In this document: positions 22,841 to 62,434 of the stretch, piece after piece
Layout of the letters: each line of letters starts with the position of its first letter
How positions within the stretch are numbered: position 1 is the stretch's first letter
Assembly (NCBI GenBank): GCA_002269645.1
Contig: NIVC01002067.1
Span: 124,001 to 188,000, forward strand
Reading direction: 5' to 3'
Length of the DNA stretch: 64,000 nt
Source: Macrostomum lignano
Lineage: Eukaryota
Program-made: the position numbers and the translations under genes
Notes under the pieces: model-generated
What the model was told of the DNA's origin: nothing
Databases searched by the model: none
What the model saw: the letters and a program-made list of their open reading frames with translations, nothing else

Positions 22841-22963
22841 GGGGTGTTCATCTAAAAATTACTGAGACAATGTGTGATAGGGTAGATTGCCAAGCAGATA
22901 TACTTTTAACCTACTATTAGTAGTTCAGACTTAAAATTTAGTGTAGTAGAAAATATTAGGGAA

Positions 22964-36957: not shown

Positions 36958-39900
36958 TTAATTAGGCAGTTCGTTTTCAGTAGCATGAAATCCGTCATTG
37001 GATCTGCCTTCATTCTGATTGGTCGCTGTGACGGCCAGCGGCTTAGGATCCCCCTTGACAGCGGCTTTGCTGGACCCTGGGGCTGACAAAATTAAAGTTT
37101 TGAAAAATTCTAAAAATTGCGTGTGTTGGCTTCTTGGGAAAATGTCTGGGCAAGTATAATCAATTAGGAACCCGTTAGGAATCATCGAAGATGAAATTCC
37201 CACAGTGTCTAAAATGGAACCCAGCACAGTGTCAAAAATGGAACCCATAGTTTCTAAAATGAAATCCACAGTGCCTAAAATGAAATCCACAGTGTCTAAA
37301 ATGGAATCTACAGTGTCTAAAATGGAATCTACAGTGTCTAAAATGGAATCTACAGTGTCTAAAATGGAATCCACAGTGTCTAAAATGGTATCCATAGTGT
37401 CTAAAATGGTATCCACAGTGTCTAAAATGGAATCCACAGTGTCTAAAATGGTATCCACAGTGTCTAAAATGGTATCCACAGTGTCTAAAATGGTATCCAC
37501 AGTGTCTAAAATGGAATCCACAGTGTCTAAAATGGAATCCACAGTGTCTAAAATGGAATCTACAGTGTCTAAAATGGAATCCACAGTGTTTAAAATGGAA
37601 TCCACAGTGTCTAAAATGGAATCCACAGTGTCTAAAATGGAATCTACAGTGTCTAAAATGGAATCTACAGTGTCTAAAATGAAATCCACAAGGTCTAAAA
37701 TGGAATCCACAGTGTCTAAAATGGAATCCACAGTGTCTAAAATGGAATCTACAGTGTCTAAAATGGAATCCACAGTGTCTAAAATGGAATCCACAGTGTC
37801 TAAAATGGAATCCACAGTGTCTAAAATGGAACCCACAGTGTCTAAAATGGAATCCACAGTGTCTAAAATGGAATCTACAGTGTCTAAAATGAAATCCACA
37901 GTGTCTAAAATGGATCTCAGTGTCTAAAATGGAACCCTACCGTGTCTAAAATGGAACCCACAATGTCTGAAATGGAGCCCAGCACAGTGTCTAAAATGGA
38001 ACCCACAGTGTCTAAAATTTAACCCACAGTGCCTAAAATGGAACCCACAGTGTCTAAAATGAAACCCACAGTGTCTAAAATGGAATCCACAGTGTCTAAA
38101 ATGGATCTCAGTGTCTAAAATGGAACCCACAGTGTCTGAAATGGAACCCACAGTGATTAAAATGGAACCCAGCACAGTGTCTAAAATGGAATCCACAGTG
38201 TCTAAAATGGAATCCACAGTGCCTAAAATGAAATCCACAAGGTCTAAAATGGAATCTACAGTGTCTAAAATGGAATCCACAGTGTCTAAAATGGAATCCA
38301 CAGTGTCTAAAATGGAAACAGTGTCTAAAATGGAATCCACAGTGTCTAAAATGAAATCTACAGTGTCTAAAATGAAATCCACAGTGTCTAAAATGGATCT
38401 CAGTGTCTAAAATGGAACCCTACCGTGTCTAAAATGGAACCCACAATGTCTGAAATGGAGCCCAGCACAGTGTCTAAAATGAAACCCACAGTGTCTAAAA
38501 TGGAACCCACAGTGTCTAAAATGGTATCCACAGTGTCTAAAATGGAACCCAGTACAGTGTCTAAAATGAAATCCACAGTACCTAAAATGGAATCTACAGT
38601 ATATAAAATGGAACCCTACCGTGTCTAAAATGGAACCCACAATGTCTGAAATGGAACCCAGCACAGTGTCTAAAATGAAACCCACAGTGTCTAAAATGGA
38701 ACCCACAGTGTCTAAAATGGAACCCACAGTGATTAAAATGGAACCCAGCACAGTGTCTAGAATGGAATCCACAGTGTCTAAAATGGAACCCACAGTAACT
38801 AAAATGGAACCCAGCACAGTGTCTAAAATGGAACCCACAGTGTCTAAAATGGAACCCACAGTGTCTAAAATCGAACCCACAGTGTCTAAAATGAAATCCA
38901 CAGTGCCTAAAATGAAATCCACAAGGTGTAAAATGGAATCCACAGTGTCTAAAATGGAATCTACAGTGTCTAAAATGGAATCCACAGTGTCTAAAATGGA
39001 ATCCACAGTGTCTAAAATGGAATCCACAGTGTCTAAAATGGAACCCACAGTGTCTAAAATTTAACCCACAGTGCCTAAAATGGAACCCACAGTGTCTAAA
39101 ATGGAACCCACAGTGTCTAAAATGAAACCCACAGTGTCTAAGCATCTCAGCCACATGCACACTGTTCTGCTCAGTACAGTGTAAACTTACGATCACCAAT
39201 AGGCTGGGTGTAGCTTCGCTTCTCCAAGTAACTGACCAGGAATCTGTAGATGAAGGCGAGCTGACCCTAGGGTGCAAGCATGAGGTTTTTGTTGTGTCAT
39301 GACACACTCGAAACTCCATGACCAATTTTCTAAACCTCCCTAACCAGTTTTAAATCTGATGACCTACTTCGAAAGTTTGAATGACTCACTGGAATGTAAG
39401 CTAGATGACCATTTCCACTCATGACCTTTTTTACCCTATACATGTACCTTTGACACCCACGGTCATAATCCTCCCAAACTTATATGACCTTTTCCACCAT
39501 CCACGGCCTCCATGAATCCAGGCTTTACCTGGGTCTGCACCGTGACCCCAAATAAACCCTCACCTTGGTCTGCACCATGACCCCAAACCCTCACCTTGGT
39601 CTGCACCATGACCCCAAATAAACCCTCACCTTGGTCTGCACCATGACCCCAAACCCTCACCTTGGTCTGCACCATGACCCCAAACCCTCACCTTGGTCTG
39701 CACCGTGACCCCAAACCCTCACCTTGGTCTGCACCATGAGTTTGCGGCAGGCCCGCAGCTGCATGACCGTCTCAAACACGTTGATGGTTTTGGCGCCGCG
39801 CAGCTCCAGCGAGCGCACCAGGATGTCCAGCGCGATCAGGGTGCCGGTCCGGCCGACCCCGGCGCTGCAGTGCACGAGAATCGGCGGCTCGTCGTCGCTT

Positions 39901-42900
39901 CGCCTCAACTTCGGCGCGTAGCTGCGCATCTGGGCGAGGAAGTCGGCGAGGTCGTCGACATTCGGCACGTTGTAGTCAGCCCAGCCCAGGTAGAAGAGCT
40001 GCACCACCTGAAGCGGCTCCGTCTGGTTTCTACGCAGGTTGGAGGGGTTGGAAATAAATATTTGCAGAAAGGCTCGTACACACGCTCACACAGGGGGTGT
40101 GCCCTTATGAGTGTGAACCGCACGTGCACACACACAAGCCCCAAATGAATGTGGCCACGCAAGGAATAGAACCAGAGTCTGTTCGCCTGTCCCCTCGGTG
40201 GCGACGTCTCAGTCTTTAATAGCATGATGATTTTTATGTAGCATGATGAAGAAATGACACCAAAAATAGACTATTAGTCTATAACACTCGTACACTCGCA
40301 AGTCTTGCAAATCATCGTTAGCCCAAAAATAAAGATTGGCTCAGATTACCTAGAAGAGTAAATAGGACTTTTCGATCCGATTAGAAACACACACTTAGAA
40401 GAGTGGAACAGCGTACCTGCCCCAGCAGAAATACTTGGTATGTAAATTCGCTATTAAATATACACTTTACCTGTCGGCACTGCACGTGACCAGCATTTTC
40501 CGAACCGTATAAGTACCCAATGAACTTTCGCTGTCCAATACCACTTTGATGTCGTCGTAATATTCAGATTGGCCAACAGTTACTGGCCAGAAACGCTCGC
40601 ATTTCTTTTTCTCGCCTTCGAGGCACTGGGTTAGGGTTATAATGAGAGTCACCTTGTGCTGGTAGATCATGCGCCAGTGATCGTCTAGTGTGCCCGGCAG
40701 GGGGCCTTGGCTGGATATGAACTCTCTCTGGCGGTCCAGGCCCCTGATTTGAGGATGGGTGGGGTTGCAACTTCACTTGCTTTTTAGAAAACTTTGGAAG
40801 GCTGATTTTTTACGCAAAAAATGTACACACTTACCCCATACATCCAGCTCACCTAGTTCACTCTCCTAGTCCTATAGTGTACACCTAGTTCACTCTCTTA
40901 GTCGTATAGTGTACACCCAGTTCACTCTTCTAGTCGTATAGTGTACACCCAGTTCACTCTCCTAGTCGTATAGTGTACACCCAGTTCACTCTCCTAGTCG
41001 TATAGTGTACACCCAGTTCACTCTCCTAGTCCCATAGTGTACACCCAGCTCACTCTCCTAGTCCTATAGTGTACACTGTGTACAGTATGCAGTTAAAACT
41101 CGACCATTCCTTGTAATTTATATCTACGTGAACCAAACTGCATAACAAGCATGAATGTACACTGCTACAGGTACGCACCTACCCCTCTTCACCTCACCTG
41201 ATGTAGTTGGCATTGATATAATCATCTGGAGCCAAACCCGGGCCTTCGTAGTCGGATTCCAGAGTCACCCGAGTATGATCGTAGGGCAGGATGTCCGTGT
41301 ACCTGTTCTTAGCCCTGTTGCAGTCTTCCACAGCCGCATCGCAGGTGAACTTGTAGTGCTCCAACGCTGCGCACTCTTCCCGCATCTCTTCAAACTGCTG
41401 GTGAACCCCCAGCTCGCTGTCTCTCAGCATTGAAGCCGCGTAGAAACCAAACTCTTCAACTGCCACCCCGAGGCTTTCTAGGCGTCTTGGGAAAATTGAG
41501 ATGCAGAAATAATTAAGGCTGGATCTTGTCAAGGACTCAAAAGGGAATTAGATGCTCAAAAGAAGCTTATCACAACTCACTGCATGGGAATATCTCGCGA
41601 TTCCAGCCTTCCGCCTGAGGCGCCCATTCCAAGAAAGTGACGTCTTAAAAACAGCGACGCTGTCACGCCGACCACTGCAATAGCTAGAAACAACATTGTG
41701 CCGGTGAGGCCGACAGCCAATAAGCTAGAAGATACTCGTACCTCTGGTTCCGGTGTAGTCCTCACCTGGAATTGAGGCCATGTTGGGATGTTCGTTGGGA
41801 TTTGGATTAGGAACATATGCCAGAAACATACGCTTAGTTTACACCTAAGAATGTTTAACAACTATAGCAAAACACTTGTCTAACAGTTGTGTGCCTGTCT
41901 AACAGTTTCTAACTAACTAATAACGTGTCTAACTGTTGACATTGACCTGTCTAACACAACAACTGTAGCAATAACATAGGCAGTGTCCTGTCATCCATCA
42001 TAATATTTGTCTAAATTTAACATCTATATCTTTTTTACAGTAACTATAGCAAAGTGTGTATCACAGTTTAAAACCATTCAAAGAAAATAATTTTAACAAA
42101 AAAGAGATTATAAACTGTAATTAGGTATTTTCTTACCGAAGCCCACTGCACCTCGGACGCCTGGTTCTTGTAGACAGCCCAGTAGGTCAGGTTGTATTCG
42201 AAGCCCGGCATCAAATTGTAAAATATGATTTCACAGAAATGTTTTCTAACAACACAAGAATAATTTTGTTTTTCACCGGATAATCGTGCTTCCATTCGAT
42301 AAGAAGTAGTTCTCTCTTTGAAGGACGCAACTAATCTTCGACTGTCACTCGACTGTCTGTTCAGCGTTGGAGATTGCGGCTCTGTGGGGAGAATTGGTGC
42401 ATCGAATTTTTTGTTTGAAACATCATTAAAGCGAATAGCTAATCATGGACCAGAGGAGTCCGCAGAGCAGCAGCATGCAAATTCTGCAGCAGAAGTTCTG
42501 GTGGCAGAAGAAGCCGTGTTGGAATTGGCGCTGGATATCATCGAGGAAAACAGGCCCAGCAGCGCCCTGGTTGGCAGATGGACTTAGAGCAGATTGCGAT
42601 GTGGAATCTAAGGAGTGGAGTCGCTGAATGATGAGAACAATGCTGTAAACTTCCTCCAGCTAGCCAGCTAGCCTTCCTCTGACCCAAAGCAGGTCTGGAA
42701 CACGATCAAATGCCTCAGCAACGGCCAACAAGCAGCCCAGCCCAACGAGAACCTGGTGGTTGACAACCGAGAACTCTGCACTGACAAAGACAAATTCAAC
42801 GCCTTCGGCTGCTACTACGAGAGAATCAGCACGCTGAAGCACGACGCCACTCACCGCAAATTCAAGGTGAAAACGGCCAACCGCGCCTCGCCAACTATTC

Positions 42901-45900
42901 TGTCAATGACGACAACTACCGCCGTGATTTCACCGAAGGCGAACTTTGCAGAGAAGTCGACCGTCTGGACCCGAGCAAGAAGTGTAGCCTGGACGGCAGA
43001 GAAGCGGCTCTTTTCCTTCATCTGCCCGACAATTGACGCTCTCCTTGGCTCAAGTCTTTTTTCGCTGCTGGCGCACCGGCTCCCCGGCCCTCTTCTTACT
43101 TTACGTCAACGCCTGGACGGAGTTCACGACGCCAGAAGTTGAATACAGCGGGTATGCCGACGACATCGCCTTGTGGTCCACCGGAAGAGACGTCCGCGCC
43201 ATCTTGGATCGCATCCAGGACGCTCTCCAGCGGATCGAGAAGTGGGCTGACTTCCTGCGCGTCGATCTCAACCCAGCCAAAACCGAATGCTGCCGCCTCT
43301 TCAGTAGAGACCGTGCCGACCGGGATCGCGCCCTCCTCTATCGCTGTACGGCCACGGTATCCCACCCCTAAGCAAAAACTGAAGTTCCTTGGGGTCTGGA
43401 TCGACAGAGGACTTCTGTTCGACAGGCACACAAACACGGTCAAGGACAAGATGCAACGCAGAACAGCAATCATCCGCGCCCTTGCGCACTGGGAATGGGG
43501 CTGGGACCGCCCCCTGCTCCTTCGGGTCTACCGCGCCCTCCTCGAGTCGGTGGTCTAGCATGCCGCTGCAAAAACCCGCCTCGACGACCTCGATCGCGCT
43601 CAGAGAGAAGCGCTCAGGACCTTTACCGGGCTGCCTCGCTCTACTCCCGTCGAAGCCATCTACCTTGAGGCGAATGTCCACCCAATCAGTCTCTTGCTGA
43701 CCTACGAGAAAGTGTCCCGCCGCCCCATCGACGACCCGTTTCGGCGAATCTGCGATAGGCACCTGAACATCCGTCTGGCGGCTAACAAAGGCCTTCGCGA
43801 ACAAGCCAGAGCCTGCTGCAATGCCATGGTCGCTCTGCCTCGTCTGCCTTTTCCTCTCATCTGCCATCCTTCATGGGACTCTCTCATCGATTATGTAGTC
43901 CATCTGTTTACCAAGCTCCTGGAGTTCGAGGGCCCCGCGTCCGCGGCAGTGCTCTCCGCCATTGAGCTGCGCTGCCCCGCCTCGTACTGCCATCCTGGCG
44001 GACAGTCAGAGCGCCAGCGTCATCCAAGCGGACCAGCCCACGCTGAACTCCAGGCTCGAGACCGCTAAAGCTCTCCTTACTCAAGCGGCTCGCCGTACTC
44101 AGATGACCCTGCAGTGGGTGCCCGGGCACTCAGGGGTGCACGGCAACGAACTGGTCGATGCCGAAGCCAAAACCGCCGCTGCAGTCTGTCAGGAACAAGT
44201 CGAAATTTCGCCTCTAAAAAACGTATATCGGTCACCACCTCAAGTACCAACCCGGCCTGCACGGTCACCTGGAAGTGTACCGGCCGTGACCCGGTCTCGC
44301 TCGCGCCCGGTACTCGCCGGCAGCAGATGCTCGCCTCCCAAATCAGATCCGGCTGTCCCGAATCGTCCTACTACCGCATTGCCGAGAGGGGGAACCCTGT
44401 CGTCTCTGCAACCAGCCGGCCGAGCAATTCCTTATTCTGTGCGTGTCCGAAGCTCGATACTACCCGACGCATCATCGGCGTCACTTGTCTGCGCGACTTA
44501 GCACAAGGGGACGTGGTGGCACAGCTCTTGGGGGCCATCTACTGGCGGCCCCTCTGAGCTCACCAACGCATTCAACAACAATAACATCAGCAACAACACC
44601 AGCAACATCAGCAACAACACCAGCGACATCAGCAACAACACCAGCGACATCAGCAACAACACCAGCGAGAACACCAGCGACATCAGCAACAACACCAGCG
44701 ACAACACCAGCGAGAACACCAGCGACATCAGCAACTACACCAGCGAAGCAACAACACCAGCGACAACACCAGCGGCAAACCAGCGAAAACACCAGCGACA
44801 ACACCAGCGACAACACCAGCGACAACACCAGCGAAAACACCAGCGACAACACCAGCGACAACACCAGCGAAAACACCAGCGACAACACCAGCGAAAACAC
44901 CAGCGAAAACACCAGCGACAACACCAGCGAAAACACCAGCGACAACACCAGCGACAACACCAGCGAAAACACCAGCGACAACACCAGCGACAACACCAGC
45001 GAAAACACCAGCGACAACACCAGCGAAAACACCAGCGAAAACACCAGCGAAAACACCAGCGACAACACCAGCGACAACACCAGCGAAAACACCAGCGACA
45101 ACACCAGCGACAACACCAGCGACAACACCAGCGACAACACCAGCGAAAACACCAGCAACAACACCAGCGACAACACCAGCGACAACACCAGCGAAAACAC
45201 CAGCGAAAACACCAGCGAAAACACCAGCGACAACACCAGCGACAACACCAGCGAAAACACCAGCGACAACACCAGCGAAAACACCAGCGACAACACCAGC
45301 GACAACACCAGCGAAAACACCAGCGACAACACCAGCGACAACACCAGCGAAAACACCAGCGACAACACCAGCGAAAGCACCAGCGAAAACACCAGCGACA
45401 ACACCAGCGAAAACACCAGCGACAACACCAGCGACAACACCAGCGACAACACCAGCAACAACACCAGCAACAACACCAGCGACAACACCAGCGACAACAC
45501 CAGCGACAACACCAGCGACAACACCAGCGACAACACCAGCGAAAACACCAGCGACAACACCAGCGAAAACACCAGCGAAAACACCAGCGACAACACCAGC
45601 GACAACACCAGCGACAACACCAGCAACAACACCAGCAACAACACCAGCAACAACACCAGCGAAAACACCAGCGACAACACCAGCGACAACACCAGCGACA
45701 ACACCAGCAACAACACCAGCAACAACACCAGCGACAACACCAGCGACAACACCAGCAACAACACCAGCAACAACACCAGCGACAACACCAGCGACAACAC
45801 CAGCGACAACACCAGCGAAAACACCAGCGACAACACCAGCGAAAACACCAGCGAAAACACCAGCGAAAACACCAGCGACAACACCAGCGACAACACCAGC

Positions 45901-48900
45901 GACAACACCAGCAACAACACCAGCAACAACACCAGCAACAACACCAGCGAAAACACCAGCGACAACACCAGCGACAACACCAGCGACAACACCAGCAACA
46001 ACACCAGCAACAACACCAGCGACAACACCAGCGACAACACCAGCAACAACACCAGCAACAACACCAGCGACAACACCAGCGACAACACCAGCGACAACAC
46101 CAGCGACAACTGGTCTAAAAAACATTGAGCTTTGAGGGGATCTCAAAAACATTAGCTTTTGTATGCATAACAATAAACGATTTCGATCTACATTCATACT
46201 TGTCTCGTGTACAATTTCAAATTTGAGTGGGATCTTAGAGAGCAGGATCTGAGAGATTGGGATCCTGGGAGGTTGGGATCTGAGAGAGTGGGGTCTGAGA
46301 GAGCAGGATCTGAGAGATTGGGATCCTGGGAGGTTGGGATCTGAGAGAGTGGGGTCTGAGAGAGCAGGATCTGAGAGATTGGGATCCTGGGAGGTTGGGA
46401 TCTGAGAGAGTGGGGTCTGAGAGAGCAGGATCTGAGAGATTGGGATCCTGGGAGGTTGGGATCTGAGAGAGTGGGAACCGAGAGGGTGGGATCTGGCAGA
46501 TTGGGATCTGGGAGATTAGAATCTGAGAGTGAGATTTTTAATTTTGGGTAAGATTTTTGGGGATCTAAAGTGCTACTTGGAATCTGAGAATGAGATAGGC
46601 AAGATTGGAGTGAGATTGGGAAACTGGGTGAGATTAAAAATCTATAGTGATATTTGGGGTTGTTGTTAAACGGGGGAGGGAAGCTGGGCTTACCGCGGAT
46701 CAGCCCTAAAGGGGGCTCTGCCGCTAGTGGAGCACCGAAGAGTTTTTGGATAGACTACTTAAAGCGGTCCGAGAGCGGGGATACCCCGAAGTCAACGGAA
46801 ATGGCTTATCAATTGGAGTGAGTCTGGAAGGCTTGTTTCCGAAAGGGAGACTCCAGGCGGGAAGACCGGCCGCCTCTATTGCTACCAACCCAAGGGTTTA
46901 AGTTTATAAGTTTAGTTTAGTTTAGCGCTTATGAAGTTTAGCGCTTGTGAAGTTTAGCGCTTGTGAAGTTTAGCGCTTATGAAGTTTAGCGCTTGTGAAG
47001 TTTAGCGCTTATGAAGTTTAGCGCTTGTGAAGTTTAGCGCTTGTGAAGTTTAGCGCTTATGAAGTTTAGCGCTTGTGAAGTTTAGCGCTTGTGAAGTTTA
47101 GCGCTTGTGAAGTTTAGCGCTTGTGAAAGTAGGTGAGTTAGCGCTTATGAAAATTAGCGCTTGTGAAGCCTCCCCCTGAAACCCTCTAAACGCGCCTTTT
47201 GACACTACCCAATTTTTATTGCCTTTCTTGGAATTCCAGCCTAAAGCTGCCGTGTACATTCCAGTGGACTGGCTAATGTACATTACTGCTGAACCAATTA
47301 GCAATATGTTTACGCCTGCAAGCATGGGCTTCTAAAGTCAAAGTAATTTCAACTGCCTTTTTTAAAAATAAAAATAGCTTATGTATTCTTTGCTACTGAA
47401 CTGAAAGTAGAAAGCTGTTTTACTAAGTATATGACTGAGTGGCCCATCCACGAATAGCTATTTTAGTATCTAGTACCTGCGGCTTAAATCAACAGACAGA
47501 ATTTATTGCCCAACTATTAATAAATTGAAAAAAAGGATTAACTTTATTATCAAATGGCTAACCATTTATCAAATCACAAAGCTTATTCAAATGACTTATT
47601 AAATGACATGTCCCGATCCATAAAACTGAGAATGCAACAATAAACTTTTAGATTTGCCGAAACCGAACCTAACGATCGTCAGTGTGACAGCAACCAACGA
47701 TAGTAGTATAACAGCTGCTGCGCCGAAAAATTTCAATCAAACTTACGAAATTTGTTCCGAAGATAAGTGCAAAAATCTCTTAAAAGCAAACAATAGCGTT
47801 TGCTTTACGGGTCTCCAACCGGGTACTGTGTACACTCTGACTGTGCGAACAGTCAAAACTGCATTTCCTGCATCAGATGCAGGACTCAAGAAAGCAGACT
47901 CAACTTCCAAATTTCTGGTACTGTATTCAAAAGGAAATTTTAAATACAGAGGTTTCTCTTTACAACAGGGCCATCTCTGCTCTCTCAGCATTCGGATCCC
48001 TAATCTCACTGCCATATATACAATCTCACTACCACGTTTCCAATTTCCCTCCCAGCATCTCAATCTCCCCTGATCTCATTCGGGGAGGCTTCACAAGCGC
48101 TAAACTTCACAAGCGCTAAACTTCACAAGCGCTAAACTTCACAAGCGCTAAACTTCACTACCAACGCTTCAAGGTCACTATCCCCTCTAGGGAGAACGCC
48201 AACGACAGCTGGGCCCCTCAGGAGGTTCACTGCTTTACTGACGGATCCTCCAAAGACGGTTTATCCGGCTTTGGAGTCTGCGTCCTTATCAACGGACGCG
48301 TGATCGTCACTCACGCCCAACACACTGGCAGACTCTCCAGCGTCTTCCAGAATGAAGTCCTTGCCATCAGCTCCTGTGCAGCTGAGCTCCACTGCAGGGA
48401 CTTCAAGGACAGAAGAATATTCTTCCACCCTAACAGCCAGGCCGCTTTGCAGGCCCTGTGTCACACCACTACGAACTCCTGAACAGTCCGCGACTGTATC
48501 GGGCAGCTCAACAAGCTGGCTCGGAGGAACACCGTCCGGCTTACGTGGATCCCAGGACACGCCGGCTTCAAAGGTAACGAGCTCGCCGACTCCCTCGCTA
48601 AGGCGGGCTGTTCCGGCTCGCTCCTTGGCCCCGTGCCCCTGGCCCCCATCCCCGCCACTGTCATTAATCGTCAGATTAACGACTGGGCGGACATCCTGCA
48701 CTTGCGCAGATGGGATGGTATCTCCAACTGCCGCCAATCCCGTGCGGCAGTGCCCAATCCGTCCCTCAAGCTGCGGAGAATCCTTTTGAACCAAAATCGA
48801 AAAGATATCCGATCTTTCGAAATCGAAAAGATCTCTGCCCTTTCTGCAACCTCGAGAACGAAGACGCCAAGCACTTCGTCTGCTACTGCCCGGCCTTCAA

Positions 48901-50994
48901 CCGAGACCGGCTCAACCACCTCGGGCCCAACCCGTCCCTGGACGACGTTTGCCGGCCCGAGAACATCCCACGGCTCACCCGGTTTCTCCGGGCCACCAAG
49001 CGAGCCTCCGTCTTCCCCACCGAAGGCAACGCTGCAGACAGGCCCGGCAGACCTCCCTGACCGGCCCCGCGCCCTAGCCTATGCGGGCCTTTCAGGGATT
49101 AGCGGAATGGGCGACGCTCGCCTCCCCGCTGCGTCTTCGGACCGCCCTGCAGCTAAGTCAAGTAAGTCAAGATATTACATGTACTATCAGTATGATAGCT
49201 TCGTTCCATAAACCTGAATTTTTACTATGTCGAAATTTTACAACAGCGAATTTTATTGTACTTTAACAAACAATTTATTTAAATGCCTCGTTTGTGATTG
49301 AGTGATTGAGAGTGAACGAGTGCAGTATAGCGTCACTCTATGGCAAAATATTCTAACCTACCGTAATTATTGTGGGTCACTTTAAAAAACCTTAATATTT
49401 CATAGGCTCAAAGCTAATTGCATGACCAATTGAAGTACCATTTTTATATACAAAGTGTATTTAATGGCTTTACCAATGGATGGAATGCCACTGATAAACA
49501 GATGTTGGCGCCAGCAAACTTTTCTATCTATAGGTTAACACTACGAGCTAAGAGAGTTGCACACTAAAAACTCTGAAGCACAAGCTTAAGCCTTTCCAGC
49601 TTTAAACATCGCTGGCAAATTATTACGAATCTAAACATATAATTTTATGGAAAGCTTGTTTAATAAAGTTTACAATGAAATTGTTCACATTATCACTTGT
49701 GTGGTGAAGCATTTGGTACACGAATCTAAGAGCAAAACAGCTTTTCCTATCTTACTTGAATCTAGTAGAGAATTTGATTTTATCTACAGCTGAACATAGT
49801 TTGTTTCATAGGGTCCATCTATTGCCCATCCATAGTTTACTCACTTGTTATTGCCAGCAGCCACTGCGTTGGACCTTCCCTATAATCGGGACTTTCAGCA
49901 ACGGCTCTAATGGTGATGTTGTAGACTTCTCCACTTGAATTGTAATAACACGTGTGCCTCATTGATTTTGTCTCCACTGCAGCAGCTCTGGAGTCGCAGT
50001 TGACAAAATATGTCAGATTTAAATGTTTCACCGCCTGACTGACATTGTCTGGCCAGGACCAAGCAATCTCTATCAATTGTGCTGTTGTACGATTCACCTG
50101 CACTTTTAGATTAGGAAGTTCTACTGGTTCTGGCGTGGTTTGCACTGCACTGCCAGCTGTTGTTACGGTAGTTGCAGTTGTAGTAGTTGTTTGAAGGATT
50201 GCAGTTGTAGTCGTAGTTGAGGAGTCAGTTGTGCGGGACTTTGTCGTAGTCTGCTTTGTCGAGTTGGCAGTAAATGAAGCCGTAGTGCCATTTTTAGTTG
50301 TAGTTAAAGTTTTAGATGCAGTTGAAACGGCAGTTAAAGAGGCAATTGTAGAGGCAGTTGAAGCGGCAGTTGTAGAGGCAGTTAAAGCGGCAGTTGAAGC
50401 GGCAGTTGTAGAGGCAGTTAAAGCGGCAGTTGTAGAGGCAGTTGAAGCGGCAGTTGAAGCGGCAGTTGTAGAGGCAGTTGAAGCGGCAGTTGTAGAGGCA
50501 GTTGAAGCGGCAGTTGTAGAGGCAGTTGAAGCGGCAGTTGTAGAGGCTGTTAAAGCGGCAGTTGAAGCGGCAGTTGAAGCGGTAGTTGAAGCGGCAGTTG
50601 TAGAGGCAGTTGAAGCGGCAGTTGAAGCGTTAGTTGTAGAGGCAGTTGAAGCAGCAGTTGAAGCGGCAGTTGAAGCGTTAGTTGTAGAGGCAGTTGAAGC
50701 AGCAGTTGAAGCGGCAGTTGTAGAGGCAGTTGAAGCGGTAGTTGTAGAAGCAGTTGAAGCGGCAGTTGTAGAGGCAGTTGAAGCGGCAGTTGTAGAGGCA
50801 GTTGAAGCGGCAGTTGAAGAGGCAGTTGAAGCGGCAGTTGTAGAGGCAGTTGAAGCGGCAGTTGTAGAGGCAGTTGAAGCGGCAGTTGAAGCGGCAGTTG
50901 AACTAGGCCTAGACTGCTCACTGGTTGGATTTGCCAGAGAAGCCAGCACCAAGCTCGCTATGATGGCTAGCAAAATAGCAATACCTTTACTCAT
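36958..50994 (-). CDS. Receptor-type protein tyrosine phosphatase (mucin-FN3-FN3-TM-single PTP, R3-like), 8 exons: 49845-50994, 42137-42381, 41581-41765, 41198-41485, 40471-40743, 39723-40029, 39191-39266, 36958-37082; 882 aa
   Basis: All joins are GT-AG and phase-compatible (2,649 nt total). Signal peptide, Thr/Ala repeats, FN3 motifs (NLMPGFEYNLT), TM (LLAVGLTGTMLFLAIAVVGVTASLFL), PTP motifs KNRYTDILPYD, DYINANY, QGPL, KCERFWP, HCSAGVGRTG, MVQTKGQ. AATAAA at 36936-36941. Confidence 0.93.
37200..39140. repeat. 21-bp intronic minisatellite, about 90 copies
   Basis: Unit gtgtctaaaatggaatccaca, in the last phosphatase intron. Confidence 0.96.
39520..39737 (-). repeat. 31/35-bp minisatellite made of the exon 3' end plus splice donor
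   Basis: Minus-strand unit (A/C)TGGTGCAGACCAAG|GTGAGGGTTT(ATTT)GGGGTC; donors at exon boundaries 39723, 39692, 39661, 39630, 39595, 39564 and a variant at 39529. Confidence 0.92.
40850..41075. repeat. 32-bp intronic minisatellite, about 7 copies
   Basis: Unit tatagtgtacacccagttcactctcctagtcg. Confidence 0.9.
42660..44580 (+). mobile_element. Decayed non-LTR retrotransposon (RT + RNase H, I/Ingi-like) in phosphatase intron 1
   Basis: RT motifs SPALFLLY, YADDIALW, KFLGVWID; RNase H QWVPGHSGVHGNELVD; many frameshifts, stops and internal deletions; ends in a (CAA)n tail at about 44570. Confidence 0.9.
44570..46110. repeat. 12-bp minisatellite (acaccagcgaca/aa), about 125 copies
   Basis: Directly continues the LINE (CAA)n tail; explains ORFs 44443, 44481 and 44728. 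Confidence 0.96.
46225..46510. repeat. 59-bp minisatellite, about 4.5 copies
   Basis: Unit gagagcaggatctgagagattgggatcctgggaggttgggatctgagagagtggggtct. Confidence 0.9.
46890..48157. mobile_element. Foldback-like structure: inverted arms of 16-bp tandem repeats around a loop of about 906 bp
   Basis: Left arm (aagtttagcgcttgtg) x about 13 ending gaagcctcccc at 47175; right arm ggggaggcttc at 48082 then (acaagcgctaaacttc) x4; CTACCAAC at 46882-46889 and 48158-48165. Confidence 0.6.
47652..47951 (+). CDS. Isolated fibronectin type III exon, antisense to the surrounding phosphatase gene
   Basis: Acceptor ttttag at 47651, phase 1; open frame LPKPNLTIVSVTATNDSSITAAAP...VCFTGLQPGTVYTLTVRTV with the FN3 L-x-P-G-T-x-Y motif; the candidate phase-1 donor AG|GTTTCT at 47952 is weak. 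Confidence 0.7.
48158..49180 (+). mobile_element. 5'-truncated non-LTR retrotransposon (RNase H plus C-terminal Cys motif)
   Basis: VHCFTDGSS, FQNEVLAI, WIPGHAGFKGNELAD, CPFC...HFVCYC; one in-frame stop; aagtcaagtaagtcaag tail. Confidence 0.9.
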
Positions 50995-52926: not shown

Positions 52927-53738
52927 TCACTGGTAACACAGTCGATTAGGCTCAGTTCGGATCCTGGTCGAGCGCCGCGGCAATGCCAAATCGCTCGCAT
53001 TCGTGGCGTCGCAGGCGACCGCCAGGCCGGGGGCAACAGCTGCGCCGGCCGCTGCTGGTGGATCTTCCGGCGGATCAGCGACCTGCTCAGCCTCGGGAGC
53101 TTCGCCAGCCGGTACAGCATCCGCGGGTCTGCGAACTTGGTCGATGTGCCGTTGGACCTCCCGGCCGTCATCAAAGTGGCACGAGAACGACGCTGCTCCA
53201 GAGCTGGCAGTCACCACCGCCGGCTTCCATCTGCCGTCATCAGCGAAGTCCCTGGCAACCACGGCATCGCCGACCTCAATGCGGCGATCGTGAGCGTTGG
53301 CGTCGTGATGCTGCTTTTGCATCGCTTGCTGCACTGCAACCCTGGCCGGCACGTCGGGACGCACTCGATCGAGCAGAGAGCGCAGTCGCCTTCCCATCAG
53401 CAGCTCGCACGGCGGCGTGCCAGTCGTGGCATGTGGCGTCACGCGGTATGTCAGCAGGAACCGCGCTACTCGGTCTTTGAGCGAGCCGCCCTTCTGCTTG
53501 GCCAGCGACTTCTTCAGCGTTTGCACCGCGCGCTCCGCCTGGCCGTTGGATGCTGGGTGATACGGTGCAGTTCGCACGTGCCGAATGCCGTTTTTCCGTA
53601 GAAATTCGCTCATCTCTTCGCTGACTAGATTTGGCCCGTTGTCCGTAACGACAATGTCTGGCAGACCGTGAGTAGCGAAACTCTGCCGCAGTCTCTGAAT
53701 CGTGGCCGTTGAAGTCGTCGACATCATTACATGAACTT
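52927..53738 (-). CDS. pol: Outer element pol, part 2 (integrase core and C-terminus)
   Basis: VTDNGP and SNGQAERAV; in frame with part 1 once the insert and one TSD are removed (3,864 nt, 1,287 aa). Confidence 0.93.
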
Positions 53739-53743
53739 CCATC

Positions 53744-56700
53744 TGTTATGACTTCTTCTCTAGCGGAAGACAGTGAGTCAAGATCAACAAGGTCAACTTA
53801 AAAGTTGCACTCTTAGCAGAGCGTCTTATTTCATGTTCGTAACGTTCCTTTTTATTTTCCAAGCTTGAAGCATCGCTTCTTTAGCTTATGGCTGGGTGTG
53901 TGTGCGACGGAGTCGTCTATGGCCACACCCAACATCTCCCCCCTTACAATGGCAAAGAAAAATTTTTTTAAGTTAATGCGGGAGGAACAAATTTTAGCAC
54001 TTATAGTTAACTTTGGGTTTCTCCGAAAGTCGCATGCTTCTCCTGGGTTCAATAGTATCCTCGGGAACCTCAGGGATCGGAGGTGTACGCAGCCCCTCTT
54101 TTTGTGGAGGCTCCTCTTCTTGTTTTCTCCCTGCCGCGTGCTCGCCAGCTCAGGGTGGCATTCTGTCGGTTTCTGCGGGCTCCTCGCCGGTTAGACTGTA
54201 CGGATGTAGCTGATCCAAGTGAACCTTCCGATACTTTGAGTTCGGTTCATCTGTCTTGATCATGGCCATGCTCCTTCCGATAGGCAAAAGCAGTTTTGCA
54301 GTGATTGGCTTGTCTCTCTCATTTTTGTAGATAACTGGATCCTCCAGTCCAACTTGCCTCTTGGTAAACGGAACCCTGAGCTTGTGCCCCAGCAGCTGTT
54401 CCGCTGGTGACGATCCCGCTTTGTTGTCTGATGCGCGATAAAACAGCAAGAAGCGGTCAACAGACTCTTGACTGAAGCCATTTGCTTTGATGCTTTCTTT
54501 TAGCGTGCGTACGAAACGCTCTGCAACCCCATTACTTTGTGGGTGATAAGCTGCAATAGTTAGGTGCTCACAGTCAATTCCTGCCAACCACTCCGTAAAC
54601 TCCTTGCTGATAAAGCATGGTCCGTTATCTGACACAAGTGTCCTTGGAATTCCAAGCTGAGAAAATGTCCTTCTGAGACACTGAATGACAGTTCGAGAAG
54701 TCATATCTTTGGTGACGTGGACTTCAGGATACCCGCTGTACGAATCTACCAGAACGAGCATGTAGTGGTTGTCGATCGGTCCTGCAAAGTCGATATGAAC
54801 ACGATCCCAAGGACCCGCAGCTTCAGGCCAACTGGAGCGAAAATTCCTATTTTGCGGTTTTGCGGTCCTACAGATCTGGCACAAACCGACTGTCCGTTCG
54901 ATATCGCTGTCCATGGCTGGCCACCAAAACTCCGCACGAGCCAAGGACTTGGTGCGGGACATTCCCAAATGAACTTCGTGCACTGCTGCAATCGCTTTCA
55001 TGCGTAAGGATTTTGGAATAATGATCCTGTGGCCTCGAAGAATAACATCGTCCTGAACGCAAAGTTCTTCTCGCACATTTTTGAAAGGTCGCAGCCTAGG
55101 GTGTTTGAACCTTCCTGTCTTTATAGCGCTCTTCAGCAAGCGCATTTCGTTACACCGCTTCGTTGCTAGCCTGATTTCTTCCAGAGACACTGTAGTTAAA
55201 ACCGTGTGAATGTTACCAATCTCTAGCGTTTCACCGCTTCTTCCTTGCGGAACCAATCTTGAGAGCGCGTCAGATGCCATAGCTTTAGATTTTCGATACT
55301 CGATCTCGTAATCGTACGCCGTGAGAAATATCGCCCATCTCTGCAGCCTTGCGGACACTCTCGATGGTAGCTCTTTGTCACAGGCTAAGATGTAAACGAG
55401 ACTTCGATGGTCGGTTATTAGCTTAAATTTTCTGCCGCAGAGAAAACAATGACATCTTCTAACACCCCATTTTATCGCAAGCGCTTCTCGCTCTATTTGC
55501 GAATAATTTCGCTCCGATGATGACAAAAGTTTGCTGATGTACAAGACAGGACGTCCTTGCTGACTCAGGACACCACCAAGGGCAATCTGCGAAGCGTCTA
55601 CTTCGAGCTCAACCGGTAGCTTTGGGTCGTACGCATGCAAAGCAGCGTCTTCTGAAAGTGATTTCTGGATGTTTCTGAACGCATCTTGTTCTTTTGCGCC
55701 CCAACGAAACTCCACACCTTTGCGCTCAGGTGCACCAACGGAGCCGATATTCCAGAAAGGTTTGGAATGAATCGCGAGCAGAACGTAATCAGTCCGAGGA
55801 AGGATTCTAACTCGGAAAGATTCTTCGGAGTTTCCATTTCTTTGATCGCCCGCACTTTCTCTCCATCAGGATAAATACGACCGCTGTCCAGAATATGACC
55901 CAAAAACCGGACTCGAGATAAATTCCGTTGGCATTTCTGATCATTTACCTTTAGCCCTTCCGATGCTAGACGGTAAAGTACTTGTTCTTCGCGTCCTTTC
56001 AACTCTGACTCATCGCTTCCACCAATTTATATATCGTCCATGTACGCTATTGTTCCGGGAATACCTTGGATCACTTGCGATATATACCGTTGGAAAATAC
56101 TCGGAGCCGTTTTTATTCCAAACACAAGTTTATTGTACTTAAAATTTCCAAATGGTGTCGACATCACGGTTAGCGGTTTAGATGCATCGTCCAGCTCTAC
56201 TTGGTTGTACGCTTTCTCTAGATCGATGATACTGTACCGAAAGCATCCCGCCACTGTCGAGAACGCTTCCTCCGGGGTCGGTGTCGGGTAGCTATCCGGG
56301 ACCAGCTGTGGATTAAGCGTACTCTTATAGTCCACACATAGCCTGATACTGCCGTTGGGCTTGCCGACTACCACGACTGGAGACGCCCATTCCGAGAATT
56401 TCACAGCTTCGATTATACCTTCATCAAGTAAGCGATCCAATTCCTTTTTTACTGCTTCACGTTGAGCAAATGGTAACGGTCTTGCTTTTACATACTTTGG
56501 TACTGCTCCGTCTTTAAGTTCCAAATGAGCTTTCATTGTAGTTGCACTTGCTGCCAGAGATGCCATATCCATGGAGACTTTCCCATTATGTCCTGTGTCC
56601 AGCTGTACACAGAGAACATCTCGCCCCAGCAAGGCATAGCTCTTGCTGCCTTTCACTACCTCAAAGTCGATGCGCTGATATTTTCCATTCAGTTCTACCA

Positions 56701-58149
56701 CAGCTTCGTATTGACCTAATACCGTGAACTTGTGATCACTTAGATAGCCACCCAGTTGTGTATTTGAGTTCTTAAGAGCTGGTCGACCCAACTGTTTCCA
56801 GAGGGATTCTGACATTATGGACACACCCGCTCCAGTATCCAGCTCGCATGTCAGCGCGTATCTCTTTTGCCCTTCTAGTACGGACACTGTGATGGAGATA
56901 GGCTTTCGGTGATCCCGATCTGGGCAGCAACTTTGCACTTCAGCGACAAATACTTCGGAATTTTCTTGAACATGTTTTACTGTTGATTTACTCGTGCCAC
57001 CGGTCTTTCTATGTGAAAAGTCTGAGCCTCTGCAGGCTTTGGCAAAATGATTAGTCTTGCCACACCGGTTGCAGGTCTTACCATACGCCGGGCATTTAAA
57101 CTTTTCATGATTGCCGCCACACTTCTTGCACAGCCGATCCGCCACTGCCGGAGTTTTGAAATCCTTCGACTTGGACCCTGGTTTCGCGTTGAGACTTTCA
57201 GAACTGTTCCAGAATCTGATTTCGGAGTTGTCTTCATTATCTGCGTTTCCAGCAAACTTGAATGGGCTTCTGCTTCTGCTACCGCCTCTTTAAATGTGAG
57301 TGTTTTATGATCCTTGATGATCAGCTTTCCAACTATGGCTTGACTGCCAAGACCGCATATGAATTGGTCACGCATTCTCACATCTCTGTTTTCAAACTCA
57401 CATTTCTCAGATGCTTTTATTAGTCTTTCTGCAAAAGCTCTTACCGGCTCATTGGGTTCACGGCCAATTTTTTGAAATGTAAATCTTTCGGCCAACACAT
57501 ATGTCGTGGGTATTAACAGTTCTTGTAGTGCTCCTGTTAGTTCCTCAAACGACATCATGCCAGGCTTTTTTGGAGACACATAGTCCGCTAGCTTATTGTA
57601 GAGAGCAGGTGACATTCGCATCAGCAGGACATGAGCTCGTGCAGATGCGTCCCAGTTAAATAGGGTGGCTCCGATCTCAAAACCGTCGAGCCAACGATCC
57701 AGAATGGTTGACTCCTCCAACCTTTCAATCTCAGACATACCTGAGGTTTGGCGACTGCTCTGAGTGGCGTTCTGGGCTTGAGCATCCCTTTCAATTGCTT
57801 GGGACTGTGACCGGTTTTGAGAACCTCCTCCATTACGGCTTGGAGAGATCCCAGCAGACTTGGCCGCTGACTTCGTCGGATCTGCAGACTTCGTCGGATC
57901 CTTGCTCATTATGAGCTTGAACGTCTGACCGTCAGGTTACGATTGCTTGCGACGCCACTGTTATGACTTCTTCTCTAGCGGAAGACAGTGAGTCAAGATC
58001 AACAAGGTCAACTTAAAAGTTGCACTCTTAGCAGAGCGTCCTATTTCATGTTCGTAACGTTTCTTTTTATTTTCCAAGCTTGAAGCATCGCTTCTTTAGC
58101 TTATGGCTGGGTGTGTGTGCGACGGAGTCGTCTATGGCCACACCCAACA
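53744..58149 (-). mobile_element. Nested Gypsy (Mag-like) LTR retrotransposon, 4,406 bp
   Basis: 191-bp LTRs 57959-58149 and 53744-53934 (2 mismatches); 5-bp TSD CCATC; PBS TGGCGTCGC at 57949-57957; PPT 53935-53943. Confidence 0.97.
54150..57909 (-). pseudogene. pol: Nested element gag-pol, disrupted by two frameshifts and one nonsense codon
   Basis: Four ORF pieces: gag (56977-57909), knuckle/protease/RT to YMDDI-stop (56027-57145), RT thumb (55598-56002) and RNase H/integrase (54150-55715; HIDFAGP, SDNGP, SNGVAERFV). Confidence 0.92.
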
Positions 58150-61100
58150 CCATCCACTTCGAATGAGCGTCCACGATCACCAGAAGCATTTTTCCTTCTA
58201 CCGGACCAGCAAAGTCGAGATGAAGACGCGACCAGGGTCTGTCCGGCCATGCCCATGGGTGCAGCGGAACCGGCGCCGGTGACTTCAGCAGCTCACGGCA
58301 CTCGGAGCACGCACTGGACAGGTGCTCAATGGATTCATCCAGCTTTGGCCACCAGAAAAAACTGCGGGCGAGCGCCTTCATTCTAGAGGCGCCCTGGTGT
58401 CCTTGGTGCAGGCACTGCAGAAGCGCCGAGCGGCCAGCTTGCGGTATCACCACTCTTGTGCCCCAGAGGAGACAGCCATCTTGGACACTCAGCTGATTAG
58501 CCCGATTTTTGAACGGCTGTAGCTCTTGAGTTACTCGCTCGGGCCAGTAGCCAGACTCGGTGAACTGCAGCACCTTGGACAGGATCGGGTCCGTTCTAGT
58601 CAAAGCTCGAATGTCTCCGGCAGTCACTGGTTCCTCATCAAGCGTGTCCATGACTAGCACCACATCGGCTGGTGTCGGTGCCTTTGCTGGTCTCTCTGGC
58701 AGCGGCAGTCGACTCAGCGCGTCCGCACGGAGCAGCGACCGACCCGATCGGTGCTCCATCGTGTAGCTGTAGCCTGCCAGGATGAGCGCCCACCTTTGAA
58801 TTCGACCGGATGCCATTGCTGGAATCGGCTTGGACTCGTGTAGCAGACCCAATAGCGGTTTGTGGTCGCTGATCAGTGTAAACTTCCGGCCGTACAGATA
58901 CGCATGAAACCGCTTCACTCCGAAAATGACCGCCAGAGCCTCTTTGTCCAACTGGGAGTACCTGGTCTCAGCATCGTGCAAAGAGCGCGAAGCGAACGCG
59001 ATCGGCTGATCGATACCATCAATCCGATGACTGATGACCGCTCCGACGCCGTAGGGCGACGCGTCGCACTCCAGGATCAGCGGCTTACTTTCGTCGAAGT
59101 GCGCGAGGACCGGCGCTTTGCTGAGAAGCGACTTGCACTTCCTAAATGCGGTCTCCTGTTGAGTGCCCCAGCGCCACTGGGCACCTTGGTTGAGCAGACG
59201 ATGCAGCGGCGACAGCTCCGCGGATAAGTTGGGCATGAAATTCCCGTAATAGTTGACAAGTCCAAGAAAACTGCGAAGCTGTGTCACGTCTCGTGGTGCT
59301 GGAGCGTCGGCGATGGCACGAACCTTGTCCGGTAGCGGATGCAGGCCGGCAGCGTCCATCCGGTGGCCTAGATAGCTGACACTGTCCTGCATGAAGTCGC
59401 ACTTGCTCAGGCCGCAGCGCAGTCCGCTTTGGTGCAATTTCTTGAGCACTGACTCTAGTGAGCGCAGGTGAATTTCGTCGTCAACACCGGTGATGATCAG
59501 ATCGCCGATAAAACAGGCGACATGCGGAATCGACTGCAGCAGATTGTCCATGTGTCGTTGGAAAATACCGACGGCCGGAGCAACTCCAAAAGGCAGACGG
59601 GTGTAGCGCAGAAGGCCTTTGGACGTGTTAAATGTACAAATCCCTTGGGCTGCTTCGTCCAGTGGCAGTTGAGAATAGGCTTGCGACAAGTCGAGCTTCG
59701 TAAATTTTTTCCCACCTGCCAGCTTAGCAAAAAGCTCTTCGATTCTCGGTAGCGGATATTTGTCAGGTTCAACACAGAGATTTACCGTTTGTTTGAAGTC
59801 GGCACAGATGCGTATTGAACCGTCCGACTTGAGCACTGGCACAATCGGCGAGGCGTAGTCCGAGTTGTTGACTGGTCTGAGCACACCTTGCTCAATTTCC
59901 TTGTCGAGCTGAGCCTCCACCTTAGTCTTAAGAGCAAACGGGACGTTGCGTGCCTTGAAAAATCGAGGCCGGGCCCCGGCTTTCAGATGCAGCTGCACAG
60001 GCGGTCCGTTGTACTTGCCGAGTCCCGGCTCGAAAACCTCGGCATACTGGTCCAGCAGGGCGCGGATTCCAGGGTGCTCACTGTCTTTTCGCACCTGGTT
60101 GATGCTGCGCCAGTCCAGCGGCAAACATGCCAGCCAGTCACGGCCGATCAGGTTCGAACCAGAGCCCTCGACTACGAGCAGTGGAAGCTCCTTGGCAGCT
60201 CCGGCAGCTTGCACTCGGACGGTAATTTTACCTAGCAGGGGGACCGGCTCTCCTGAGTAGGTGCGCAGCTTAGTGTTGGCAGGTTCTAGCTTTGGTCCTT
60301 CCCGCAGCTCTGAGCGAAATGTTTCTGAAGATATGAGCAAGACAGATGCACCCGTGTCGACCTCCATCCGAACTGGCGTGCCTTCGATGATGACCGTGGT
60401 CTCGATCGGTGGAATCTTCCCACACCGTTCAGCCATCACGTGCAGCGAATGTGCCTCTTCTTCATCGACCTCAACCTCTCTCACATTATGGTCCATGCGA
60501 CGATTCGAACCCGCAGGAGACTTACAGGCAGCAGCCGTATGGCCCACCTTCGAACAGTTGAAGCACTTCTTGTCAGCAAACGGGCACTTCGCCGCGACGT
60601 GCCGCTGCGACCGGCAACGAAAGCAGCGTCCAGTGGACTGTGGCTGGTGTGCTATCTGAAAGGCGTCCTGACTCGCAGATTTCATCACGAGAAGATTGCC
60701 CTCAGCGGCCGACGCTTGAGCCTGCGCCAGAGATATTGCGGTTTCGAGAGTCAGCTTCTTCTCCGAAAGAAGCCTTCGCTGGATGTTGTCGTCAGCGATG
60801 CCAAGCACGAGCCGGTCTCTGATCATGTCATTCAGGCTGCCGCCGAAGTTGCAGTCCCGTGCCAGTCTGCGAAGATCCGCGAGAAAATCCGCAATCGATT
60901 CACCAACTTGGCGACTCCTGGAGTAGAAACGGTAACGTAGCACGATCTCAGGGGGCTCAGGGTCGAAATTCTCTTTCAGCTTAGCGCAGATCGCTGTGTA
61001 GCTGGACTGGGCAGGCGACTCTGGAGACAGCAGGCTGGCAAGCAACTGATACGTCTTCTTGCCGCAGAAGCTAAGGAGAACGGCACGCTTCTTCTCTTCT

Positions 61101-61201
61101 TTGATATCATTGGCCTCAAAATACTGCTCCAGTCTTTCTTGGTACTGAATCCACTTTTCAGTGCCCTCTTCATAGAGTTCTATTGAGCCAACCAAGCTCA
61201 T
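58150..61201 (-). CDS. pol: Outer element gag-pol, part 1 (gag, two zinc knuckles, protease, RT, RNase H, integrase N-terminus)
   Basis: ORF with CFRC..H....C, CFNC..GH....C, DTGAS, CADFK, LDLSQAY, LECDAS and HHCC; the RT motif reads FIGD; interrupted at KW-M by the nested element. Confidence 0.93.
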
Positions 61202-62434
61202 GCCTCGTCGCCACTGTAAAGACTTCACTTAGTTTGCGTGGCAGAAAGATGCTTATGCGATAGCACGATAAATCATTCATATATGTATTTGTCGAAATAG
61301 TATTTTAACCGATCAATAATTTGGGGAATGTAAAATAGACATATTAGTCACGTGCACGTACGCACAAAAGAACAAGCGAAGGAGAGAGTTGAAGGGCACG
61401 ATGGTAAAGTGTACGCAGCAACCCCCAGCACCCCACACAACACAAACCAAGTCACTACACTCTTCCTCTCTCACCCTCTTCCTCTCTCACCCTCTTCCTC
61501 TCTCCCCATCTTCCTCTCTCACCCTCTTCCTCTCTCACCCTCTTCCTCTCTCACCCTCTTCCTCTCTCACCCTCTTCCTCTCTCACCCTCGTCCTCTCTC
61601 ACCCTCTTCCTCTCTCACCCTCTTCCTCTCTCACCCTCTTCCTCTCTCACCCTCTTCCTCTCTCCCCATCTTCCTCTCTCACCCTCTTCCTCTCTCACCC
61701 TCTTCCTCTCTCACCCTCTTCCTCTCTCACCCTCTTCCTCTCTCCCCATCTTCCTCTCTCCCCATCTTCCTCTCTCCCCATCTTCGTCTCTCCCCATCTT
61801 CCTCTCTCACCATCTTCCTCTCTCCCCATCTTCCTCTCTCACCATCTTCCTCTCTCACCATCTTTCTCTCTCCCCATCTTCCTCTCTCCCACGCTTCCTC
61901 TCTCCCCTCTTCCTTTCTCCGTGTCTGTTTTGTCTAGCCTCTCACCTGCCCAAAACTCGACAGTAGCTATACATTACACTCGGTGACTTGCGTTGCCAAA
62001 AAATGCAGCGCGCTTTGAACCACTCGAATCACAAGAAAGCATTTTGTTATTTACCAAAAAGCGTCAGTTTTAAAAGTTCTGTGGCTATAAATCTGCTATA
62101 CAATGCCTGCAGAAGGTTGTAAATTTATCGAACTGTTTTATCATTGTACCTAAATTGCATTGGCACGAGTATTGCATATTAGCGAACCGCTGAAACTGCA
62201 GGTGCTATTTGAATGTTTCAGAATGGAATTTAATGACAGAAGTCTATCCAAACCCTGTTTATATACTTCGTAGTTAAATAGCATTTCTGGCATCAACGTC
62301 TTCTACATACAAGCACTTATGCATCATTTGCCACTTATTTCCGCAACTTATATTGATGATTTTAGCTTCATAAAGTTATATACGCCTCATATTGGTCTTA
62401 TGAAAAATCTCGTCATTTTAAGAAATTAAAAAAA

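Follow-up and report, generated by a model that had tools for sequence, protein, structure and literature searches.

An antisense fibronectin type III exon within a foldback-type inverted-repeat unit in intron 1 of a Macrostomum receptor phosphatase gene

Why should an exon-like segment for a fibronectin type III (FN3) domain lie on the opposite strand in an intron of a gene that itself encodes FN3 domains, with inverted repeats on either side of it? The question is raised by a 64,000-nucleotide stretch of the Macrostomum lignano genome (GenBank assembly GCA_002269645.1, contig NIVC01002067.1, positions 124,001 to 188,000; hereafter the window, or the 64-kb window, in whose numbering all positions are given), where a − strand gene encodes an R3-like receptor tyrosine phosphatase of Macrostomum and a foldback-type inverted-repeat unit of ~1.3 kb is located within its intron 1. 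The inverted-repeat structure and the antisense FN3 exon in this intron are real. The original prediction had offered three explanations for them: a polymorphic or somatic inversion that switches ectodomain length, a fixed inversion that silenced a native exon, and capture of an exon by a foldback element. Of these, capture fits best, a fixed inversion is tenable at a lower probability, and the switch found no support.

The unit is bounded by two unequal arrays of a single 16-mer. Tandem Repeats Finder and a repeat finder identified, on the left, 13.1 copies of AGTTTAGCGCTTGTGA (46919-47127) and then two degenerate units that extend to 47166, such that the array totals 13-15 units spanning 46919-47166, and, on the right, 4.4 copies of the reverse complement (48089-48158). 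The 16-mer is matched 18 times in the window, in every case within these two arrays, against an expectation of 0.02. Each array is closed inwardly by an 11-mer, GAAGCCTCCCC at 47165-47175 and its counterpart GGGGAGGCTTC at 48082-48092, and GAAGCCTCCCC does not occur elsewhere in the window. The arms pair over 68-70 nt at 99-100% complementarity; the right arm and one register of the left arm form a stem of ~77 bp when folded as a single strand (RNA or DNA), the sequence of arm plus inner motif being TTAGCGCTTGTGAAGCCTCCCC. Such an anatomy defines the foldback elements, which are accompanied by duplications of 8-10 bp (PMC4079207). The arm sequence itself is undescribed and matches no described element, and searches of the full text of the literature for the arms or the exon returned no match.

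The entire unit is flanked by an 8-mer, CTACCAAC, which occurs twice in the window, in direct orientation, and is a putative target-site duplication of a size that agrees with that of foldback elements. The original prediction had recognized this bracketing repeat, but had placed its left copy ~35 bp from the arm; when the degenerate repeats at the start of the arm are taken into account, the left copy sits 8 nt from recognizable arm sequence. We estimate the chance of such a placement at ~0.1-0.5%. Because two separate insertions followed by inversion would leave unlike outer flanks, the matching 8-mers favor integration of the arms and loop as one piece. If the unit was inserted whole, the pre-insertion site would read ...TATTG CTACCAAC GCTTCAAGG....

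Between the arms lies a loop of 906 bp (47176-48081) with no other copy in the window. Its sole domain match is fn3, and neither a transposase nor a recombinase was found, the open reading frames of the element and its flanks matching only fn3 and retroelement RNase H. The middle of the unit consists of the FN3 reading frame alone, with intron-like DNA on either side. The exon begins at 47652 on the + strand, directly after the acceptor TTTTAG, whose last base is 47651. A frame of 139 codons (47654-48073), antisense to the phosphatase gene, is open here; frames of at least 139 codons are open in 0.75% of shuffled versions of the loop.

Several lines of evidence identify this + strand segment as a real FN3 domain, complete and ending near 47917. 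The Pfam fn3 profile (PF00041) matches it with E=9e-5 and 23 bits, just below the 25-bit cut-off. A word-indexed search of 5.8 billion proteins returned no match to the exon product, and a full scan of 1.84 billion representatives with phmmer (HMMER) returned 117 proteins at E<1e-3. All of those checked are long multi-FN3 proteins, with names that include eta-like and beta-like receptor phosphatases, tenascin-like, and fibronectin-like; the top single-domain match scores ~22 bits at ~36% identity. The AlphaFold2 model, built on 28 such domains, is of moderate confidence (predicted local distance difference test score 69.6) and has six modeled strands of the seven-strand β-sandwich, the last comprising residues 74-82. 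A Foldseek comparison with the PDB listed 50 matches, all to FN3 domains (TM 0.5-0.77), and the fourth FN3 of human phosphatase eta is among the matches listed. With respect to the core residues of the domain (Trp in strand B, Tyr in strand F, and a Leu that precedes Pro-Gly), Leu54 and Tyr60 are present, while the near-invariant Trp of strand B is replaced by Ala. The claim of the original prediction that an FN3 exon lies between inverted 16-mer arms is borne out.

The host exon 1 donor, A/GTGAGT, was read directly, and the phase-1 acceptor of the antisense segment fits it (LAIT-N-LPKPNL), as had been proposed. Two candidate donors follow the domain, at 47918 and 47952, each matching the MAG/GTRAGT consensus at 5/9 positions, compared with 6-9/9 for the donors of the host gene. 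Use of the 47918 donor, at the domain end, gives phases 1 then 0, which is the pattern of host exon 2; the flipped segment would then be frameshifted into exon 2 and in frame only with the transmembrane exon. The 47952 donor, the phase-1 site of the original prediction, sits 11 codons beyond the domain end. The proposal that flipping the loop would add a third FN3 in frame is thus formally correct, but it rests on 47952, the poorer placed of these two weak donors.

The host gene has the features of the R3-like receptor phosphatases: a signal peptide, an ectodomain composed only of FN3 domains, one transmembrane segment, and a single tyrosine phosphatase domain, with Y_phosphatase as the only catalytic domain match. 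Its downstream exons are 95-99% identical to an M. lignano phosphatase (P0001; 96% overall). Repeats make up over half of the genome of M. lignano, a neopolyploid (PMC10733133; PMC5730564), and in view of the neopolyploidy the 96% match probably points to a homeologue or to a sister species. The only Macrostomum protein model found starts downstream of the cassette region. The catalytic motif VHCSAGVGRTG is encoded by the exon at 39660-40085. Within exon 1, a tandem array with 12/24/36-nt periods (50318-50902) encodes ~200 residues of a mucin-like repeat of the STAASTASTTAA type upstream of the first FN3.

We favor, at about even confidence, the view that the unit is a foldback-type transposon of the non-autonomous kind, and that the intron-exon fragment in its loop was captured and is now an inert passenger. 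In this proposal, a foldback-type DNA transposon, or the relic of one, would have been inserted in intron 1 of the R3-like phosphatase gene, its loop carrying an intron, FN3 exon, and intron fragment that may derive from some FN3-encoding gene by transduplication similar to that of Pack-type elements. The whole unit would have integrated with duplication of 8 bp of target, CTACCAAC. The exon would now lie antisense to the host transcript and without a strong donor, and both properties imply that it is inert; the host would probably be affected only through the ~77-bp stem in the pre-mRNA. The anatomy, comprising unequal inverted arms of tandem 16-mers, a shared inner 11-mer, and a middle without transposase, fits capture best; transposition as a unit, capture, and a lack of function are inferred. 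The loss of the strand-B Trp, the lack of any other + strand FN3 in the window, and the mobile and tandem DNA that fills most of the intron point the same way. Capture is further supported by comparison of the FN3 with those of the host, which gave 9.4 and 3.5 bits, versus up to 22 bits for generic FN3s (phmmer and BLAST). Derivation from the host's own FN3s was considered and rejected, as phmmer and BLAST place these far below unrelated FN3s; a simple BLOSUM local alignment to the first host FN3 had given a score of 51 (z=5.5), a likeness that is lost in the phmmer/BLAST comparison.

A number of observations weigh against this proposal. Only one copy was seen and mobility is unproven: neither the rest of the window nor the JGI metagenome contigs yielded another copy of the arms, so that the search suggested by the original prediction for further arms with different loops came back empty in both. 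No close relative or parental gene of the FN3 was found in the 5.8 billion or 1.84 billion proteins or in the JGI contigs. The exon resides in the very gene that uses phase-1 FN3 exons. The right CTACCAAC copy falls at the 5′ edge of a truncated retrotransposon, a coincidence, and the left flank is without retroelement homology, with the result that the empty site cannot be reconstructed. Finally, the right end of the loop (47986-48078) resembles, in inverted orientation, the end of a satellite 400 bp to the left, with a local alignment score of 35 compared with 18.3 ± 2.7 in 500 shuffles (maximum 29) and a top score of 31 among ~400 controls from the window. This likeness hints at a local origin, and the loop could be flipped local intron DNA; alternatively, the satellite and the inner arm repeats could belong to one element family, by analogy with Tetris (PMC4079207).

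A fixed local inversion, which we consider less likely but a serious alternative, would explain the locus by supposing that a once-sense FN3 exon of the phosphatase (a third FN3 or a membrane-proximal alternative) was flipped by recombination between flanking 16-mer arrays and so silenced. The position of the segment between the gene's two FN3 exons, its phase-1 start, and the host exon 2 phase pattern obtained with the 47918 donor are all as expected for such an exon, yet the FN3 is no nearer to the host FN3s than to unrelated ones, and the two candidate donors are weak. Among its best named relatives are eta-like and beta-like phosphatases of the R3 type, to which the host is similar, but there is no supporting orthologue, the sole Macrostomum model beginning downstream. 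Before such a flip, the right end of the loop, at present inverted with respect to the 61-mer satellite, would have been in direct orientation; identical outer 8-mers, on the other hand, are unexpected if the two arrays arose by separate insertions.

An origin without any transposon is improbable. Under this explanation the structure would be the product of a repair or replication rearrangement (a fold-back or templated insertion), or of misassembly, given a neopolyploid genome rich in repeats. Tandem arrays form a mosaic in the region, the satellite-like and 16-mer blocks do not mirror each other in order on the two sides, and the genome, more than half of it repetitive, is hard to assemble (PMC5730564); the flanking 8-mer and the common inner 11-mer nevertheless resemble element ends. 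A missed-adapter artifact does not fit, because the loop is unique and non-palindromic.

It is very doubtful that the segment is an exon of an independent + strand transcript, whether of a nested or antisense gene or of a transposon-driven chimera. The 139-codon open frame and the plausible acceptor would suit such a transcript, but the phase-1 start requires an upstream exon, of which none was found, and a profile built from 1437 FN3 segments detected no other + strand FN3 in the window. The + strand neighbors are decayed retroelement open reading frames, and the product is absent from the 5.8 billion predicted proteins, a set that includes M. lignano proteins. The earlier view that no + strand gene owns the exon is upheld within the window only.

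An active or polymorphic invertible cassette, in which arm recombination in the germline or soma of some individuals or cells would leave the exon antisense and skipped or sense and included, yielding two forms of the phosphatase ectodomain of different length, is extremely unlikely: 70-nt inverted repeats of 99-100% complementarity could support recombination and the phase arithmetic permits an in-frame product through the 47952 donor, but the element has no recombinase or transposase, the single assembled sequence shows one orientation, the donor that would keep the frame is weak and sits 11 codons beyond the domain, the domain-end donor is in phase 0 and frameshifts into exon 2, and the conserved Trp is lost.

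The surroundings of the unit are themselves largely repetitive (Table 1). Intron 1 is 7.4 kb and consists mainly of mobile and tandem DNA, including two non-long-terminal-repeat (non-LTR) retrotransposon fragments, a 12-mer array, and a 61-mer satellite. The non-LTR element to the right of the unit has homologues with PF00075 (P0008-P0018) and carries one in-frame stop and one frameshift; an ENA metagenome contig (L001; ERZ23496033, scaffold_6737) has 57% protein identity to it. A second 3′ fragment of the same family, with the TAAGTCAAG tail, is present at 22298-22841. We considered whether the foldback unit was inserted into the right-hand retrotransposon. This is not shown, as the left flank (46635-46889) has no detectable retroelement continuation: a profile of the region upstream of RNase H gave no match, a Smith-Waterman comparison with L001, the closest relative, gave p=0.26, and tblastx and blastn found nothing. 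Either order of insertion of retrotransposon and foldback unit is possible. The same unique flank, termed stretch X in Table 1, does not recur in the window and matched no protein, retroelement, Rfam family, tRNA, or repeat; Rfam and tRNA scans of the whole window were likewise negative. Open frames run through the 12-mer array on both strands, with 561 codons on the + strand (NTSD/NTSE repeats) and ~540 on the − strand; the array is probably a minisatellite or the expanded tail of a retroelement, and not coding. The idea that this array is an inverted copy of the mucin-like repeat of exon 1 was dropped, since the units of the two, in their best register, agree at 7/12 positions, no more than expected by chance. 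Beyond the intron, a tandem-repeat block of more than 2 kb (36961-39349), with − strand frames SILDTVD... and CGFHFRH..., lies just downstream of the exon with the catalytic motif, and two adjacent or nested Gypsy-type LTR pol regions (protease, reverse transcriptase, RNase H, and integrase) occupy 52927-61228 on the − strand, just upstream of phosphatase exon 1; one of the Gypsy-type open reading frames is still open over 1053 codons.

Table 1. Features of the phosphatase locus and of the inverted-repeat unit in its intron 1, in window coordinates
Feature	Position	Strand	Description
Transmembrane exon	41580-41765	−	Follows host exon 2; succeeded by the exons of the single tyrosine phosphatase domain
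Host exon 2	42137-42381	−	Second FN3; acceptor at 42381; phase 1 in, phase 0 out
Decayed non-LTR element	about 42400-44530	+	Differs from the right-hand element; reverse transcriptase thumb and RNase H, many frameshifts
12-mer array	44583-46110		AACACCAGCGAC; 1.5 kb, 128 copies, 91% matches; begins directly after the 3′ end of the decayed non-LTR element
61-mer satellite	46225-46634		5 copies, 94% matches, 15-mer subrepeats; degenerate end akin (inverted) to the loop repeats
Stretch X	46635-46889		Unique, GC-rich, 255 bp between satellite and element
Left CTACCAAC copy	46882-46889		Putative target-site duplication; 8 nt (CCAAGGGT) before the first degenerate arm repeats
Left (long) arm	46890-47175	+	AAGTTTA-type degenerate start, 13.1 units of AGTTTAGCGCTTGTGA (46919-47127), two degenerate units, GAAGCCTCCCC (47165-47175)
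Left loop part	47176-47651	+	Unique, AT-rich (35% GC), intron-like; acceptor TTTTAG at 47646-47651
FN3 exon-like segment	47652-47917	+	Phase-1 start, 2 nt plus 88 codons; frame stays open to 48073
Two weak candidate donors	47918-47953	+	CTG/GTACTG at 47918 (phase 0, domain end); GAG/GTTTCT at 47952 (phase 1)
Right loop part	47955-48081	−	About four repeats of 20 nt (AATCTCAC...); akin to the 61-mer satellite end (46486-46574), inverted and diverged
Right (short) arm	48082-48157	−	GGGGAGGCTTC and 4.4 inverted 16-mer units; ~77-bp stem with the left arm
Right CTACCAAC copy	48158-48165		Putative target-site duplication; abuts the last 16-mer
Right-hand non-LTR retrotransposon	48166-49171	+	5′-truncated, decayed; starts at the right edge of the element; RNase H and C-terminal Cys/His motif, TAAGTCAAG tail
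Host exon 1	49846-50994	−	Signal peptide, Ser/Thr/Ala-rich mucin-like repeats, first FN3; phase-1 donor A/GTGAGT (49845/49844)

If captured as proposed, the segment would show how exons of cell-surface proteins can be moved into introns of related genes, where they may provide raw material for exon shuffling, in a group, the flatworms, whose mobile DNA is poorly described. The analysis also marks intron 1 as the site of a 77-bp perfect stem in the pre-mRNA. As a single, unreplicated copy without evidence of function, the unit has its value as a lead for a genome-wide survey of the 16-mer repeat family.

Among described systems, the closest in anatomy are the foldback elements of Drosophila, FB and Tetris of D. 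virilis, which also have long inverted arms of tandem subrepeats that are often unequal, a variable middle without transposase, and target duplications of 8-10 bp; in Tetris, as may be the case here, internal repeats are linked to, or seeded, nearby satellite arrays (PMC4079207). In contrast to these elements, the present unit has short arms (about 77 and 285 bp) built of a 16-mer matching no described element, one copy is seen, the superfamily could be Mutator-like or P-like, and the middle contains a recognizable protein-coding exon. In the latter respect the unit is similar to Pack-MULEs and other Pack-type elements, which are non-autonomous, 1-2 kb in length, and carry a host gene fragment with intron between inverted termini (PMC6431247; a CACTA example is given in PMC1947982). 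A fragment of this kind, with FN3 exon, acceptor, and intron-like flanks, is what lies inside the inverted termini here, although Pack-type elements are mostly from plants, with identified parental genes and many copies, whereas this unit is from a flatworm and no parent was found. Mobilization by foldback arms of the DNA between them is also a property of Ising's TE and FB-NOF, but these span tens to hundreds of kilobases with whole genes, compared with 0.9 kb and a single exon here (PMC6431247).

Galileo, a Foldback-like P-superfamily element of Drosophila buzzatii that is cited in PMC4079207, has similar foldback-like arms with internal tandem repeats. The present unit differs in that it contains no Galileo-like sequence or transposase. 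Galileo has reportedly generated natural inversions in D. buzzatii, recombination between inverted copies inverting the intervening DNA, and produces 7-bp duplications and megabase inversions between separate copies. In the programmed invertible segments of prokaryotes and yeast (Hin/Gin, shufflons, and 2-micron FLP), the orientation of a coding segment between inverted repeats determines which product is made, and the systems encode or depend on a dedicated site-specific recombinase acting beside short specific sites. The unit shares with them the inverted repeats around a coding segment, but no recombinase was found and one orientation was observed. Its probable place is with two known classes, the foldback elements and Pack-type gene-fragment capture, and confirmation would make it a clear case, from an animal, of a coding exon carried by a foldback-type transposon.

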